The position numbers and the translations under genes are program-made. From the sequence record AP019418.1: a DNA stretch of 64,000 nt, one strand, 5' to 3'. Positions 9,090 to 15,323 of the stretch are shown here, piece after piece (positions within the stretch are counted from its first letter, which is position 1; the number at the start of each line of letters is the position of its first letter). A model generated the notes under the pieces. That model saw only the letters and a program-made list of their open reading frames with translations. It was not told where the DNA came from and made no database searches.

Positions 9090-10190
9090 TTAGAAACCTA
9101 CACGACTTGCTTTGCGTGGGCTACTGCAAGAACTAGTATTCAATGCTTCAGCTAAAGTAAGATTATTACCGACAAACTCAACTGGATCTAGACCATTAGC
9201 TAAACGAGCTGCAATCGCTTGTTCAGCAGTAAGTGTTTTGAAGGTAAGAATATCGAAAGCACGGCCAGGTCGAACTAAAGCTTCATCAACATCACGAAGA
9301 GTCGGAAGATTAGTAGAAATGATAATCTTGGTCTTAGTAGATACTAGACCAGCTGTAGCATTTAATAGCCCTGACATATTACTATTACCATCTACACGTT
9401 TAGCCACCATTTTATCAGAGTCTTCTGTAATAATGAGTGAATTATCCTCAACACCACGAATAAAATTAGTCAAACCGGCGTGGCCAAGTACATCATCTTG
9501 ATCAGCTAGATACACATTACGATCATTATAACCACGAGCCCGAATAATCTCATTGATATAATTAGACTTACCAGTGCCAGGAGGACCAATCAATAGTAGA
9601 ACATTAGATTCAGATGCAGCGAATTCAGTCCAGATTTCAGCTGGAGATCGATCTAGGAATGGATACATTTCCATCATATTTGGATTGTAGTTACGAACAG
9701 AAATAACTTCACTAAAGCTATATAGTTCATTATTTTGATAGTTAACCCGAATTCTTTTAATACTAGGTGGACGAGTCTGATCAAATACTTCTTCAAAACG
9801 TAATTTAAATACTTTGATCAGTTCTTCATTGGAGTATAATCTAAAGTTCTGACTAGTGGTACCTTCCATTCCATTCATTAGGAAACCAATGATTCCTTCA
9901 TCATCTAGTAATGCAAAACCACCACTAATTCTGAATGCTTTCAGATTTAAAGGGCTTATAACTTCATCACATAGTTTGTAAATTTGTTCTTTGATGAATT
10001 CTTTTCTATCAACTCCAAAAGGATAGTGAATACGTAGATCTTCACTATCTGAACTAATTCCCTGTTCATTAAGAGTATAGCGATATGCATTGGAAATTGC
10101 ACGGCCATTATCAACCTCCATAGCAATGGAGATAAAACGATCAATCCACTTCTGCTGGACTAACGTAAGTTTGCTATTACGATAATTCAT
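9090..10190 (-). CDS. AAA+ ATPase (phiKZ gp208-like)
   Basis: Walker A GPPGTGKS, Walker B IITEDSD, STN sensor, DEALVRPGR arginine finger. Confidence 0.92.
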   Translation of the reverse strand: MNYRNSKLTLVQQKWIDRFISIAMEVDNGRAISNAYRYTLNEQGISSDSEDLRIHYPFGVDRKEFIKEQIYKLCDEVISPLNLKAFRISGGFALLDDEGIIGFLMNGMEGTTSQNFRLYSNEELIKVFKLRFEEVFDQTRPPSIKRIRVNYQNNELYSFSEVISVRNYNPNMMEMYPFLDRSPAEIWTEFAASESNVLLLIGPPGTGKSNYINEIIRARGYNDRNVYLADQDDVLGHAGLTNFIRGVEDNSLIITEDSDKMVAKRVDGNSNMSGLLNATAGLVSTKTKIIISTNLPTLRDVDEALVRPGRAFDILTFKTLTAEQAIAARLANGLDPVEFVGNNLTLAEALNTSSCSSPRKASRVGF

Positions 10191-12317: not shown

Positions 12318-12494
12318 TTAATTATTAAAAGATAAATCATAATCACTTTGTCTGCGATTCGGATTAACAGGATCAGGATATTTTCCAGTTTTGATAACTT
12401 CTTTTATAGCTCTAAAATCACGTTCTAGAAAATCTAGTTTTTTAACTAACTCTTTTTCTAATTCTTTATTGAGTAGTCTTCTTAATTTGCTCAT
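12318..12494 (-). CDS. Small coiled-coil protein (MSKLRRLLNKELEKELVKKLDFLERDFRAIKEVIKTGKYPDPVNPNRRQSDYDLSFNN, 58 aa)
   Basis: Translated by hand; fills the apparent 165-bp gap and overlaps the upstream gene by 29 nt. Confidence 0.6.
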   Translation of the reverse strand: MSKLRRLLNKELEKELVKKLDFLERDFRAIKEVIKTGKYPDPVNPNRRQSDYDLSFNN

Positions 12495-12861
12495 CTACGT
12501 ATACTCTTACAATGAACCAATTGATTAGGCCAAAACCTTTTGGTGTGATGGTAATGTCATCTTTATATCCATTTTTAGTGATTACATTACGTAATACTTT
12601 AATTGCTTCAGGTGGAATAAGATTAGCATTACCGGTAACACTATACTCGAAATAATAACCTACACCTGGTAAATAACCTGATGCAATCTGGTTAGTACCT
12701 GTGATATTACTAACGTGTTGGAAGTCACTAAAAGCATTCTTGTAGAATAACAAAATATTAGGAATTACTTCATCCCTAATAGTAGAACTAGTAATGGCAT
12801 CCGCCGATGGAAAATAAGGTACTAATTCATCTGTTACATTGGTGCTATTAATATCGGACAT
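12466..12861 (-). CDS. Hypothetical early protein (131 aa)
   Basis: GAGGA RBS, early promoter directly upstream. Confidence 0.85.
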   Translation of the reverse strand: MSDINSTNVTDELVPYFPSADAITSSTIRDEVIPNILLFYKNAFSDFQHVSNITGTNQIASGYLPGVGYYFEYSVTGNANLIPPEAIKVLRNVITKNGYKDDITITPKGFGLINWFIVRVYVDEQIKKTTQ

Positions 12862-12907: not shown

Positions 12908-12925
12908 GTAATATAGATTTAAATT
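12908..12925 (-). promoter_or_regulatory. Early promoter (TATATTAC)
   Basis: GTAATATA at 12908-12915 on plus; minus strand reads TTTAAATCTATATTAC, matching the phiKZ early consensus. Confidence 0.75.
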
Positions 12926-12943
12926 AATTTATAATGAATGACA

Positions 12944-12970
12944 TAAAGGAGCCCCTGGTGGGCTCCTTTA
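12944..12970 (-). terminator. Intrinsic terminator closing a minus-strand non-coding transcript
   Basis: TAAAGGAGCCC-CTGGT-GGGCTCCTTTA; no protein gene ends here on either strand. Confidence 0.8.
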
Positions 12971-13145
12971 ATGTAATAGGTCCGACCCCTATCTAGAGGT
13001 CGGTGAGTAGCAAGGCACCGTAGTTGGGGTTCGTGTCGTTCCTGACGATACTTTAGTACCCCGGTTTATTTACGACTGGATCACCCCCTTAAAGTGCAGT
13101 GCGTTTTACGCAAACTGCCTTGCTCTATATCATTGCACTGTGCGT
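12971..13145 (-). ncRNA. Candidate structured ncRNA complementary to the host 16S rRNA 3' end (strand uncertain)
   Basis: Locally GC-rich, ORF-less, several stems; 13071-13091 and 13007-13023 match 16S nt 1522-1542 and 1497-1514 (E. coli numbering, 16S sequence from memory). Confidence 0.65.
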
Positions 13146-13211
13146 ATTTTTATTCGTTAGCTAATCTTATGACTTAGAGTTATATTTACATACCCCTTAA
13201 GGAAAAATGCA

Positions 13212-15323
13212 ATGATAGACTCATTTAGGAAGCTAATGGGCTCGCTATCAATTACTGAAACTGATCAAGAAATTATCATCAGTGGTTTTGATGGTGCTGC
13301 ATTCATTAGAGATATTAACAAGTATTGGCGAACCACTAAATTAGCTACGCAGTTATTTAACACGGTTAGTCGTCGTAGTATTTCATTTTATAAATTCTTT
13401 GCTCCTGAAATATATTACATGCTAGAAGCAGTAAAGAATTATAGAAGTAGATACATCTCTATTAAAACTGTTAATGCCATCCGTGAAGCAATGCTTCAAT
13501 ATACCTGGTTAAAAAATACTCGTCCTGTAGATACCAACTCTGTACCAGGTAGACTCAATTTCAAGATGTTAGACAAATTGACATTTACACCAGATGAGTC
13601 TCAAAAAGCTTATTTTGAAAATTATAATTATCGAATTGACCAGTATGGTTTACGTGGTGATATTGTTGCAGGTAAACCTGGTACTGGTAAGACATTCATG
13701 ACGATGGCTATTGCTGAAATGGTTGAGTCGGATATCATTATAGTTGTTTGTGAAAAGAAGTCTATTGATCTAATATGGAAGCCATCTATTATTGAGATGT
13801 ATAAGGAAAGACAAAAAGTATGGTCGACCATTGATGATAAAGCCTACAACGGTCAAAGAATACTTATATCCCATTACCAGGCGCAAGATAAAATAATTGA
13901 TCTATTAAGAAGCGGTATATTCAAAGGTAAGAGCATTACGGTGATTCTGGATGAATCACACAATATGAACGATCCTAATTCTGCACAATCTCTTAAGTTC
14001 CAGCAAATATGTTTTATGTCTAACTCTAATAACAGATTATTAGCGTCAGGTACCCCTGTTAAAGCACTTGGTTCTGAATTAGTAAGTGCATTAAGAGTAT
14101 TAGACGATCTCTTCACCAATGAGGTTGAAGAACGTTTTAAGAAAGCATTTGGAAAAGAGACACAGAAAGGATTAGATATTGTCCAACATCGCTTTGGGTT
14201 AATTGCGTACGTCATTGAAAAGAAAGATACTGAGGTTTTACCACCGAGGATAAAAGCGTATCGTATCAAGATACCAAATGGATCACAGTATACTCTTAAT
14301 GCCATTAAACGTGATTGTGAAGCTTTTATTAGAGAACGTGTAAAGTTCTATGCTGCGCGCCGACCAGAAGATGAGAAGTATTGGGCTAAACTAATGGCGA
14401 TACACGAGAACTCTCTTAAGACCCAGGCGCAGAAAGATGGTTTCGCTCGCTATAAGAATTTGATTAAAATAATTCAGAAGAATCAAGACCCGCGATACAT
14501 TGGTGAAGAAATTAAAGAATCTAACCAATATGAAAAAATGTTTATAGAGCCAACTTTACCTCGTAATGAAATAGCTGCTTTTAGAGATATTAAATCAGTT
14601 ATAAAATACGTTATGCTAAAGATACAAGGTGAATGTTTGGGAAGGGTTTTAGGTGCTAAACGCATTCAGTGCCATGTGGACATGGTACCGTATATTGACT
14701 GGGTTGGTATCACTGAATCAACTATGAAGAAAACGATTGCATTTACATCGTTTGTTGAGGTTGTTGATACTGTTGATAAGTACACCAATAAATTAGGTAT
14801 GCATCCGGCGGTGGTGTATGGTAAAACCAATGACAATTTACCTCAAATAATCAGTAGATTTGAGAAAGACCCTAAATTAAATCCATTGGTAGCTACATAT
14901 GCTTCCCTTTCAACAGCGGTCCGTATGACGATGGCTGATACTATGGTGACAATTAATTCACCGTTTAGGCATTACATTCTAGAACAAGCTATTGCTCGAA
15001 TTTACCGTAAAGGTCAGGATTCACAAACAGTCGTATATCAATGTACTCTCGATACAGAAGATGAACCGAATATCTCAACAAGGTCAGATGACATTCTAAA
15101 ATGGAGTCAGGCAATGGTTGAAGCTATTATGGGTATTAAATCTCCATTTGAGATCACAGAGTCATTAGAAAGTTATGTTGATAAAAATAATAATTTTGAT
15201 GAAAATAAAATCATTTATCAGATGCTAAAAGAATCATTTGAGAAGTATGATATCGCAATTGATTTTAATGACTTTGATACACGTATGTATAAACCATATC
15301 AGCCCGCATATATGCGGTTTTAA
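13212..15323 (+). CDS. SF2 (SNF2/DEXH-like) helicase, phiKZ gp203-like
   Basis: GKPGTGKT, ILDESH, ASGTP, EQAIARIYRKGQ motifs. Confidence 0.92.
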   Translation: MIDSFRKLMGSLSITETDQEIIISGFDGAAFIRDINKYWRTTKLATQLFNTVSRRSISFYKFFAPEIYYMLEAVKNYRSRYISIKTVNAIREAMLQYTWLKNTRPVDTNSVPGRLNFKMLDKLTFTPDESQKAYFENYNYRIDQYGLRGDIVAGKPGTGKTFMTMAIAEMVESDIIIVVCEKKSIDLIWKPSIIEMYKERQKVWSTIDDKAYNGQRILISHYQAQDKIIDLLRSGIFKGKSITVILDESHNMNDPNSAQSLKFQQICFMSNSNNRLLASGTPVKALGSELVSALRVLDDLFTNEVEERFKKAFGKETQKGLDIVQHRFGLIAYVIEKKDTEVLPPRIKAYRIKIPNGSQYTLNAIKRDCEAFIRERVKFYAARRPEDEKYWAKLMAIHENSLKTQAQKDGFARYKNLIKIIQKNQDPRYIGEEIKESNQYEKMFIEPTLPRNEIAAFRDIKSVIKYVMLKIQGECLGRVLGAKRIQCHVDMVPYIDWVGITESTMKKTIAFTSFVEVVDTVDKYTNKLGMHPAVVYGKTNDNLPQIISRFEKDPKLNPLVATYASLSTAVRMTMADTMVTINSPFRHYILEQAIARIYRKGQDSQTVVYQCTLDTEDEPNISTRSDDILKWSQAMVEAIMGIKSPFEITESLESYVDKNNNFDENKIIYQMLKESFEKYDIAIDFNDFDTRMYKPYQPAYMRF

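Follow-up and report, generated by a model that had tools for sequence, protein, structure and literature searches.

Introduction

The 3' end of 16S ribosomal RNA (rRNA) carries the anti-Shine-Dalgarno (anti-SD) sequence, with which mRNAs pair through Shine-Dalgarno (SD) sequences of 4-9 nucleotides (nt), and synthetic oligonucleotides or peptide nucleic acids (PNAs) complementary to the same end are the classical anti-anti-SD inhibitors. Known regulatory RNAs of phages and bacteria pair with mRNAs or with other small RNAs (sRNAs), and we found no precedent among natural regulatory RNAs for a conserved seed aimed at the anti-SD end of 16S. Here we analyse an element in a 64,000-nt (64-kb) stretch of sequence record AP019418.1, hereafter the window. 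This DNA is that of Pseudomonas phage phiKZ, identical (100%, same coordinates) to isolate PA02 and 99.9% identical to the phiKZ reference. The element is a structured non-coding RNA (ncRNA) gene, probably an independent one, of phiKZ-like Pseudomonas phages (Chimalliviridae), without an open reading frame (ORF), and its invariant part is complementary to the 16S 3' end. We put at roughly 55% the probability that it acts in trans as an antisense RNA, by pairing with the 3' tail of the host 16S rRNA.

The element resembles the SD of an mRNA in that a purine-rich sequence, UAAGGRGGUGAUC, is complementary to the 16S tail in the register of an extended SD. In contrast to an SD, its complement spans 14-21 nt and reaches the 3' strand of helix 45 (16S 1522-1529), and it lies, without start codon or ORF, in the junction of a structured and separately terminated ncRNA. 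Synthetic anti-16S oligonucleotides and PNAs share with it the target segment and the expected block of SD-dependent initiation, but they are man-made and short, while the element is natural, genetically encoded and structured. In Haloferax, a tRNA-Val fragment reportedly competes with mRNA on the small ribosomal subunit, although we know of no defined base pairing to the anti-SD shown for it; like the element, it is a small RNA for which an action in trans on the small subunit, and not on an mRNA, has been proposed, but it is host-encoded and stress-induced, whereas the element is viral.

The STAB-SD of Bacillus thuringiensis cry3A resembles an SD without directing initiation, and it reportedly pairs with the 3' end of 16S and makes its RNA more stable through the 30S subunit (Agaisse & Lereclus 1996, as reviewed in PMC4113751). 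The element likewise has a natural SD-like sequence that does not start translation. However, a STAB-SD lies in the untranslated region at the 5' end (5'UTR) of the mRNA that it protects against RNase J1 in Gram-positives, whereas the element is a free-standing phage ncRNA of a Gram-negative host, with a longer complement and a conserved scaffold; with its own terminator and with neighbours that vary in identity and orientation, it is not the 5'UTR of a stabilised mRNA. In Bacteroidetes, the proteins bS21, bS18 and bS6 sequester the anti-SD (PMC7797042). The regulation of translation that we propose for the element would also work by anti-SD occlusion, although by an RNA and not by host-encoded proteins. 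Finally, the element is small, phage-encoded and bounded by a terminator, and it has a conserved single-stranded seed, as do the base-pairing sRNAs and sponge RNAs of phages and prophages, but its seed matches rRNA instead of an mRNA or sRNA.

No description of the element was found in the literature searched, and it is absent from the ncRNAs named in the accessible text of Putzeys 2024 and of PMC11512511 (5'UTR_p40, 3'UTR_PHIKZ298 and those upstream of gp182/221/302). It is a real, conserved and previously unannotated ncRNA family, and the pairing predicted with the anti-SD end of 16S would make it a small antisense RNA whose target is of a new class.

A conserved complement to the 16S 3' end

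The complement in the window, block 1 (Table 1), read on the minus strand from 13091 to 13071, forms 21 contiguous pairs with Pseudomonas 16S 1522-1542, three of them G-U. Its bases and its pairing are exactly as described in the original prediction for this locus, which had proposed a ribosome-targeting antisense RNA and had given a sequence for the 16S 3' end. That sequence was correct when checked against Pseudomonas genomes and the Rfam small-subunit rRNA (SSU) model: an exact 78-nt 16S pattern ending in ...GUAACAAGGUAGCCGUAGGGGAACCUGCGGCUGGAUCACCUCCUUA (...GTAACAAGGTAGCCGTAGGGGAACCTGCGGCTGGATCACCTCCTTA), plus a 6-nt spacer, is present in at least 120 genome stretches of the Pseudomonas group, and the Rfam SSU model stops precisely at ...CCUCCUUA (...CCTCCTTA) in P. 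paraeruginosa.

We scanned both strands of the window against the 16S tail in 42,648 segments of 30 nt. Block 1 reached -38.0 kcal/mol, and the next unrelated site -26.6, with a mean of -8.4 and a standard deviation (sd) of 3.2. The longest run of Watson-Crick plus G-U pairs was 21 at block 1 and at most 12 elsewhere in the window. Because block 1 is an outlier in the window in both energy and run length, the match is not due to chance. The 13-mer AGGRGGTGATCCA has one mismatch-free occurrence in the window.

The most constant part of block 1 is a 13-nt core (Table 1), the sole long invariant block in the alignment of the family made with a covariance model (CM). This core is unpaired in the consensus structure and is thus a conserved single-stranded seed complementary to its putative target, as is typical of an sRNA. 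The flanks of the subgroups have diverged beyond detection by blastn while the core stays invariant, and a block that is invariant across phages so diverged implies a partner that is equally invariant. The contiguous complement to 16S, counting Watson-Crick and G-U pairs, measures 14-21 nt in 13 members and, read by eye, 18-19 nt in four later ones. It always starts within the three terminal nucleotides of mature 16S (1540-1542), and its other end lies at 1522-1528. The variation within it consists of A or G opposite U (1541, 1537, 1522) and of C or U opposite G (1526, 1525, 1523); there is no change opposite C or A inside the complement, and pair-breaking changes are confined to its ends. As far as aligned sequences can tell, such wobble-compatible variation fits selection for pairing and not for resembling 16S. 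The comparison across phiKZ-like genomes that had been suggested as a check thus gave what an antisense RNA would predict, with the complement kept in relatives and its variation preserving wobble pairing. Pairing with a naked 16S 3' fragment was also predicted by RNAcofold, with net energies of -15.5 to -26.9 kcal/mol in 13 of 13 members, while shuffled controls gave about -5.5 kcal/mol (sd ~3; best -17).

It could be argued that the core is read by a phage or host protein, or pairs with an RNA other than 16S, and that its likeness to 16S is coincidental or inherited from a captured rRNA fragment. The core can fold on itself into a small hairpin, GGR-GGUGA-UCC, with an R-U pair that would also suit the A/G polymorphism, and the element is syntenic with a virion-associated SNF2 helicase gene in seven members (phiKZ, SL2, PA1C, PhiPA3, Psa21, Noxifer and the metagenomic contig L057). 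However, the complement stops at, or no more than 2 nt from, the mature 16S 3' terminus in every member, its interior substitutions are all wobble-compatible with 16S, and rRNA is the only candidate nucleic-acid partner known to be conserved to such a degree. We consider such a partner decidedly unlikely.

The element has the anti-SD-complementary purine stretch of a ribosome binding site (RBS), but no start codon and ORF downstream of it: ATG, GTG and TTG are absent 4-13 nt past GGRGG in all 13 homologues tested. The absence of a start codon at SD spacing rules out a small ORF (sORF) at the element and upholds the proposal of an ORF-less RNA gene that is not an RBS. Moreover, the sequence downstream of the core changes through compensatory base pairs, in a covarying hairpin, and not through codons. 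Wicke et al. dropped some predicted sORFs that had no start codon despite a predicted RBS, one of the eight being intergenic (PMC8244752); this discarded intergenic sORF may be the present element.

Architecture, covariation and distribution of the RNA

Read in the RNA sense, which corresponds to the minus strand of the window, the element comprises, from 5' to 3', an upstream motif (AAAnTAC(U/G)-N9-(A)UGAUAUAG), the 5' strand of a closing helix P1, hairpin H1, a single-stranded segment (AGGRGGUGAUCCAG(Y)C), the long and irregular hairpin H2, a linker, the 3' strand of P1, an optional hairpin H3 and a terminator. The coordinates of these parts and of the neighbouring genes are collected in Table 1.

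Table 1. Features of the element and its surroundings in the window (16S numbers refer to the host 16S rRNA)
Feature	Position	Strand	Remarks
Block 1, UAAGGGGGUGAUCCAGUCGUA	13071-13091	minus	21-nt Watson-Crick plus G-U complement to 16S 1522-1542
Invariant core, AGGRGGUGAUCCA	13077-13089	minus	identical in 17/17 members; complementary to 16S 1528-1540
Predicted ncRNA transcript	12942-13125	minus	~148 nt if it stops at 12978, the mapped 3' end; ~184 nt if it runs to the end of the canonical terminator
Promoter-like motif, AAAATACG-N9-ATGATATAG	13125-13150	minus	resembles phiKZ middle promoters (nvRNAP); predicted transcription start site (TSS) near G13125
P1 5' strand, AGCAAGGCA	13116-13124	minus	9 Watson-Crick pairs with 13009-13017
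Hairpin H1, GCAG-UU-UGCG-UAAAA-CGCA-CUGC	13096-13118	minus	inner stem covaries
Hairpin H2	13026-13062	minus	base stem GGGGU/ACCCC (13058-13062 with 13026-13030)
H2 tip, GUAUCGU-CAGGA-ACGACAC	13033-13051	minus	tip loop CAGGA in phiKZ
Linker, AACUACGG	13018-13025	minus	conserved, single-stranded; complementary to 16S 1509-1514 (helix 45 5' strand)
P1 3' strand, UGCCUUGCU	13009-13017	minus	core of block 2; complementary to 16S ~1499-1507
Hairpin H3, CCGACCUC-UAGAUA-GGGGUCGG	12982-13003	minus	mapped RNA 3' end 4 nt beyond
Terminator, AAAGGAGCCC-ACCAG-GGGCUCCUUU then AUG	12942-12969	minus	phiKZ-type "hairpin + UUAUG"
PHIKZ204	12466-12861	minus	gap neighbour
PHIKZ203, SNF2/ResIII helicase	13212-15323	plus	gap neighbour

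The structure is kept while its sequence changes. P1 is wholly different in distant members (GUGUUGGUAG/CUACCAACAC in L057 and UCGUAGGU/ACCUACGA in the metagenomic member L103). The inner stem of H1 shows compensatory changes at three of its four pairs in alignment A2 and at two of four in A3, and all five pairs of the H2 base stem covary (GGGGU/ACCCC, GAUAC/GUAUC, GGUAC/GUACC and others). The loop at the H2 tip is CAGGA in phiKZ and SL2 and a GNRA tetraloop in most other members (GAGA, GGGA, GUGA, GCGA). A conserved A lies 3-5 pairs below this loop, opposite A, G or C and never U, and has the look of a conserved mismatch, not of a wobble pair. In other members H3 varies or is missing. In H1, the outer stem (GCAG/CUGC) competes for bases with the inner pairs of P1 (GCA/UGC; window 13096-13124 with 13009-13017), and this competition could be a conformational switch tied to target binding. 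An equivalent overlap of P1 and H1 (GUAG) is seen in the very different sequence of L057. The subgroup of L057 (4344-4540, plus strand) and L103 (~9560-9760, minus strand) has an extra hairpin with a second SD-like sequence, GGAGGA, in its loop, and also an extra hairpin, UCACC-GNRA-GGUGA, the arms of which copy the anti-SD and the SD-like core.

The family has 17 distinct members from at least seven genera of Pseudomonas chimalliviruses and their metagenomic relatives: phiKZ, SL2, PhiPA3, PA1C-type phages, Phabio, 201phi2-1, Viktualia, Psa21, Noxifer and eight metagenomic members. By blastn, the element was found in at least 47 near-identical phiKZ isolates and, at 96% identity, in SL2; PA1C-type phages, PhiPA3, Phabio, 201phi2-1 and Viktualia matched over a shorter, conserved core. 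Psa21 and Noxifer were added by synteny, from the gap upstream of the helicase gene, and the metagenomic members by pattern scans of IMG/VR and JGI metagenomes. On the L057 contig, a helicase gene whose product is 44% identical to PHIKZ203 lies ~800 nt from the element.

We built a CM from nine members, with the structure specified by hand. This model (R1) matches the window once, on the minus strand at 13004-13133 (119 bits, E = 2e-23). Out of sample it recognises Psa21 (E = 1.6e-9) and L057 (4.7e-4) and, more weakly, L103 (0.06) and Noxifer (0.32), and it later recovered the metagenomic members L250, L293, L297 and L319 (E = 1e-9 to 1e-13); all out-of-sample matches are on the same strand. 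Standard pairs occupy 87.6-89.3% of the cells, versus 31-46% when the 3' partners are slid by 1-3 columns; for the figure of 89.3%, the slid controls reach 33-46%. Compensatory changes affect 11-17 of the 22 pairs, and none of 500 shuffles reached the observed covariation. Since the alignments were fitted to the model, these figures lean toward the structure, although the contrast with the controls is still large. RNAalifold did not recover the structure from raw MAFFT or CM alignments; these had register shifts, which is why the structure was specified by hand and tested with slid and shuffled controls.

Other searches delimit the family. Rfam 15 gave no match at the element up to E = 10 in the window or E = 1 at six homologous loci, ARAGORN found no tRNA or tmRNA in the window, and the Rfam SSU models had no match in the region. 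A 16S fragment or pseudogene is ruled out, as the likeness is limited to 21 nt and ~17 nt and a 47-nt insert replaces the helix 45 loop; the 47-nt spacer between the two blocks given in the original prediction does lie there, at 13070-13024. Divergent members used as blastn queries matched shared terminator motifs only. Within 4-20 kb of the helicase gene, the element was not found in EL, OBP, RTH11, RP12, Ea35-70, Goslar, XC32 or Eowyn, a set made up of EL, OBP and chimalliviruses of Xanthomonas, Ralstonia, Erwinia, Escherichia, Vibrio and Klebsiella. In IMG/VR, the exact 19-mer AAGGAGGTGATCCARCCGC was found just at true 16S gene ends and in one coding coincidence, with no convergent element.

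Strand and transcription

The sense strand is very probably the minus strand of the window. A minus-strand transcript had been proposed from the terminator, and the type of that terminator, the mapped 3' ends, the promoter-like motif, the GNRA loops and the G-U pairs of P1 now make it the most likely one. The terminator hairpin that had been named is present at 12942-12969; on the minus strand it fits the phiKZ consensus (...GGGRRGGBYTTATKYYGT), and a hairpin followed by UUAUG lies 3' of the element, on the same strand, in all members read. The window is inverted relative to the phiKZ reference (phiKZ coordinate = 225979 - window coordinate), and T095, a 3' end that ONT-cappable-seq mapped in phiKZ to 213001(+), falls on the minus strand of the window at 12978, 4 nt past H3. 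T095 follows H3 and not the canonical terminator 35 nt further (12978 vs 12942), which suggests either tandem terminators or 3' trimming back to H3. In 201phi2-1, the transcription termination site at 229,201 lies 8 nt beyond the terminator hairpin of the element, on the side expected for its strand, and this homologous terminator is more than 99% efficient and validated in vivo.

Upstream, a TAC lies 19 nt before the G of ATAG, and in the mapped phiKZ middle promoters P082, P098 and P116 the distance from TAC to TSS is 19-21 nt. TAC and (A)TGATATAG motifs recur at matching spacing in about 10 of 13 homologues, and transcription would accordingly be predicted to start near 13125 from a middle-type phage promoter. 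As a candidate independent transcription unit, the element has a terminator that fits the consensus and 3' ends mapped in two phages, with a conserved motif as its putative promoter.

The structure itself also points to the minus strand. The loops are of the GNRA type on no other strand, the clean interior pairs of P1 include six G-U versus one A-C, and G-U exceeds A-C on the minus strand by 27 to 12 in the larger alignment A3. The count of 18 to 12 in the first CM alignment was too even to decide the strand, and the same count made by automatic hairpin extension was too noisy. Hairpin H3 has an interior U-G pair, which would read C-A on the plus strand.

Alternatively, a plus-strand RNA could mimic the 16S 3' end (GGCUGGAUCACCYCCUUA) and act as a decoy or a competitor. 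What it would draw off might be a toxin that cleaves rRNA, Era/KsgA-type factors, bS21/S1 or the SD sequences of mRNAs. The plus strand is identical to 16S 1522-1542 at 18 of 21 positions, CAAGGCACCGUAG resembles 1501-1514, the folding z-scores are equally good, the H2 tip stems of several lineages become fully paired with G-U, and both genes flanking the element in PA1C are on the plus strand. Nevertheless, we consider a mimic improbable. The hairpin and UUAUG, the 3' ends of phiKZ and 201phi2-1 and the promoter-like motif all indicate the minus strand, and no plus-strand driver is known upstream in phiKZ, where the PHIKZ203 promoter starts downstream. In a plus-strand RNA the loops would read UCUC or UCCC instead of GNRA, and the interior G-U pairs of P1 would turn into A-C mismatches. 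The substitutions observed (U to C at 1537 and 1541; G to A at 1523, 1525 and 1526) lower the identity to 16S while keeping antisense pairing, a CCCCC would be a poorer partner for GGAGG, and an unrelated 40-nt hairpin stands in place of the helix 45 loop, the part read by KsgA and Era. A 5'UTR or SD-sequestering leader of PHIKZ203 is ruled out by the late TSS at window 13171, which lies downstream of the element and leaves it outside the PHIKZ203 leader.

A possible second contact with 16S

The original prediction had added a second block, from 13023 to 13007, which pairs with 16S 1497-1514. Its geometry holds, with a mismatch at 1500 and a bulge at 1508, but most of the block is the 3' strand of the closing helix P1 of the RNA itself and is thus not free to pair. 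In RNAduplex against shuffles, with 16S 1485-1521 as target, block 2 is significant in phiKZ, SL2, PhiPA3 and PA1C and marginal in L103, which rules it out as a complement to 16S common to the whole family.

What recurs more widely is the linker. The sequence AACUACG(G/A/U) is found in phiKZ, SL2, PhiPA3, PA1C, 201phi2-1, Viktualia and the metagenomic members L073, L293, L297 and L319, with GACUACG as a variant in Psa21; its CUACG(G), facing 16S 1509-1514, recurs in the phiKZ-like supergroup, and RNAcofold pairs the linker to 16S 1509-1516. Similarly, (U)ACCUUG, or GGCUACC(U) in the L057/L103 subgroup, recurs facing 16S 1500-1510. A third contact had been proposed between UCACC and GGUGA. It does form in the RNAcofold dimer (13006-13002 with 16S 1488-1492), although it is confined to the phiKZ/SL2 lineage. 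The RNA may therefore clamp both strands of the helix 45 lower stem through two contacts, a possibility that is best supported in the phiKZ lineage.

Predicted action on the host ribosome

In the reading that we favour, a trans-acting antisense RNA, transcription of the minus strand would start near 13125 and end at tandem hairpins (12978 / ~12942), yielding an RNA of ~150-185 nt. A scaffold of P1, H1 and the GNRA-capped H2 would display the single-stranded AGGRGGUGAUCCAG(Y)C between H1 and H2, and this segment would base-pair in trans with the 16S tail, from 1540-1542 back to 1522-1528, covering the anti-SD, the GAUCA linker and the 3' strand of the helix 45 lower stem. It would act like an over-long SD without a start codon. 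In the phiKZ lineage, capture of the tail may be followed by pairing of 16S 1497-1514 with the linker CUACGG and the 3' strand of P1, which would open both P1 and helix 45. The expected outcome is a 16S 3' end that is occupied or remodelled. This could mean competition with mRNA SD sequences on the 30S subunit, interference with late 30S maturation or action on 16S outside mature subunits, capping of the 16S 3' end against exonucleases, or a STAB-SD-like docking on the 30S subunit that benefits the RNA itself. The binding to 16S and all of its downstream effects are what we infer from these data. Action on 16S outside mature subunits would explain why pairing is conserved as far as 1525, which is paired within helix 45 in mature subunits.

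Several points weigh against this reading. In the mature 30S subunit, nt 1525-1529 are paired in helix 45 and the free part is expected to be ~1530-1542, so simple SD-like binding does not explain the conserved reach to 1525. Phage mRNAs also carry SD sequences, such as the UAAGGA before PHIKZ203, and a blanket block of the anti-SD would therefore harm the phage too. In single-sequence folding the core is partly occluded, at an opening cost of 3.6-8.8 kcal/mol. The invariance of the core is partly ascertained, as most members were found by patterns or blastn matches that contain it, although those of Psa21 and Noxifer, located through synteny, were not. ONT-cappable-seq in phiKZ called neither a TSS nor a transcription unit for this RNA, and neither differential RNA-seq (dRNA-seq) nor Grad-seq reported an RNA at the element, which may be scarce. 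As for the strand, the folding z-scores are alike on both (mean about -1.3 on minus and -1.5 on plus), and the A-C oppositions of the H2 tip on the minus strand would be G-U on the plus strand. A stoichiometric sponge for 30S subunits, of which there would be tens of thousands, is doubtful, because no transcriptome or Grad-seq study flagged an abundant RNA and because phage mRNAs use SD sequences.

Could the pairing serve the RNA and not the phage's control of translation? As in STAB-SD, docking on a non-initiating 30S subunit might protect the RNA from nucleases or place it at or near ribosomes, and the true function would then reside either in the scaffold, that is H1/H2 and the GNRA loop, or in a protein bound to the RNA. 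The cry3A STAB-SD is a natural precedent, the element likewise lacks a start codon, and covariation shows that the scaffold is conserved in its own right, together with its GNRA loop and its A mismatch. However, the known type of STAB-SD counters a 5' exonuclease of Gram-positives, RNase J1, and needs just ~9-12 nt, and to our knowledge Pseudomonas has no RNase J. Docking would also leave unexplained the complementarity of 14-21 nt, through 1525 and to the last nucleotides of 16S, and the conserved CUACG(G) that faces the other strand of helix 45. Although it has a precedent, we regard docking as an unlikely explanation of the pairing.

A bolder form of the antisense reading, which we advance tentatively and with the odds against it, is that of an RNA clamp: the core would capture the 16S tail as a toehold, pry helix 45 open and withdraw the anti-SD. 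Pairing would spread into the 3' strand of helix 45, while CUACGG and the released 3' strand of P1 would take its 5' strand (1497-1514). Such a clamp could switch off or re-programme the 30S subunit, or its late maturation, in mid infection. We know of no natural antisense RNA that targets bacterial rRNA, and a clamp, if true, would be the first. In the mirror image of this possibility, the RNA would be a cap that keeps 3' exonucleases such as RNase R off the 16S 3' end; the complement leaves a 16S overhang of at most 2 nt. RNase R is reported to begin the degradation of 30S subunits at the 16S 3' end (PMC10901742).

If the pairing is real, nucleus-forming jumbo phages hold an RNA-based handle on the host translation machinery, which would stand beside the recently described phiKZ ribosome-binding proteins and bear on how phage translation is favoured. 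Invasion of helix 45 or re-programming of the ribosome would be categorically new, and the element would offer a natural model for designing RNA inhibitors or tethers aimed at the 30S platform. Even with a modest effect, it is a covariation-supported ncRNA family in the model phages phiKZ, PhiPA3 and 201phi2-1. Transcriptome, Grad-seq and antisense-knockdown tools exist for these phages, which makes the hypothesis directly testable; phiKZ mRNAs have already been knocked down with antisense oligomers (PMC12571901).

Genomic context

In phiKZ the element occupies a 350-nt gap between the divergent genes PHIKZ204 and PHIKZ203, in which RefSeq phiKZ has no annotated feature. The gap that holds the element is gene-free in every phage and measures 215-350 nt regardless of the orientation of the flanking genes; in the relatives found by blastn it is 260-320 nt, and the flanking genes vary in identity and orientation. 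In phiKZ, PA1C, Psa21 and Noxifer, the terminator of the element has no same-strand upstream gene to serve. The element and the helicase gene are divergent in phiKZ, Psa21 and Noxifer and co-oriented in PhiPA3, while in Phabio and 201phi2-1 the element sits between unrelated genes. It therefore lacks the constant, upstream and co-oriented position relative to one gene that a cis leader or riboswitch would have.

These arrangements bear on whether the element is a cis-acting leader or attenuator of a neighbouring gene, or the RBS of an unannotated small ORF. It has a strong SD-like sequence, many phiKZ 5'UTRs yield short, prematurely terminated RNAs, and in PhiPA3 the element lies upstream of the helicase gene in the same orientation. 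Against this, the phages do not share one flanking gene on the strand of the RNA, and some have none there; the element ends in a strong terminator that is itself followed, in several phages, by an early-type promoter, and the missing start codon and the compensatory evolution described above argue against translation. In these phages, according to the literature, the phage nucleus separates transcription from translation, which makes ribosome-coupled attenuation unlikely. A cis leader is ruled out by the variation of the neighbouring genes, and any cis-acting role of this kind is very improbable indeed.

Some smaller features of these loci deserve mention. In PhiPA3 (L001), the homologue of PHIKZ203 is inverted and lies on the other side of the element compared with the window, implying that the element was kept next to the helicase gene through a local inversion. 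Past the terminator and upstream of PHIKZ204, at window 12908-12920 on the minus strand, there is a motif of the phiKZ early-promoter type, AAATCTATATTAC, and a similar early-type motif (...CTATATTA.) is also found 3' of the element in Phabio and in the metagenomic members L104, L250, L297 and L319. With such a promoter motif past its terminator, the ncRNA is insulated from the next transcription unit.

Other metagenome loci, unrelated to the family, carry sequences of their own: L052 has tandem repeats of ~31 nt, each with CCGGATCACCTCCTTA, L080 and L083 have tandem repeats with TGGATCACCTCCCATCTCCTATATCATCACTATCA, and L049, L056 and L066 have palindromes of the form TGGATCACCTCC...GGAGGTGATCC.

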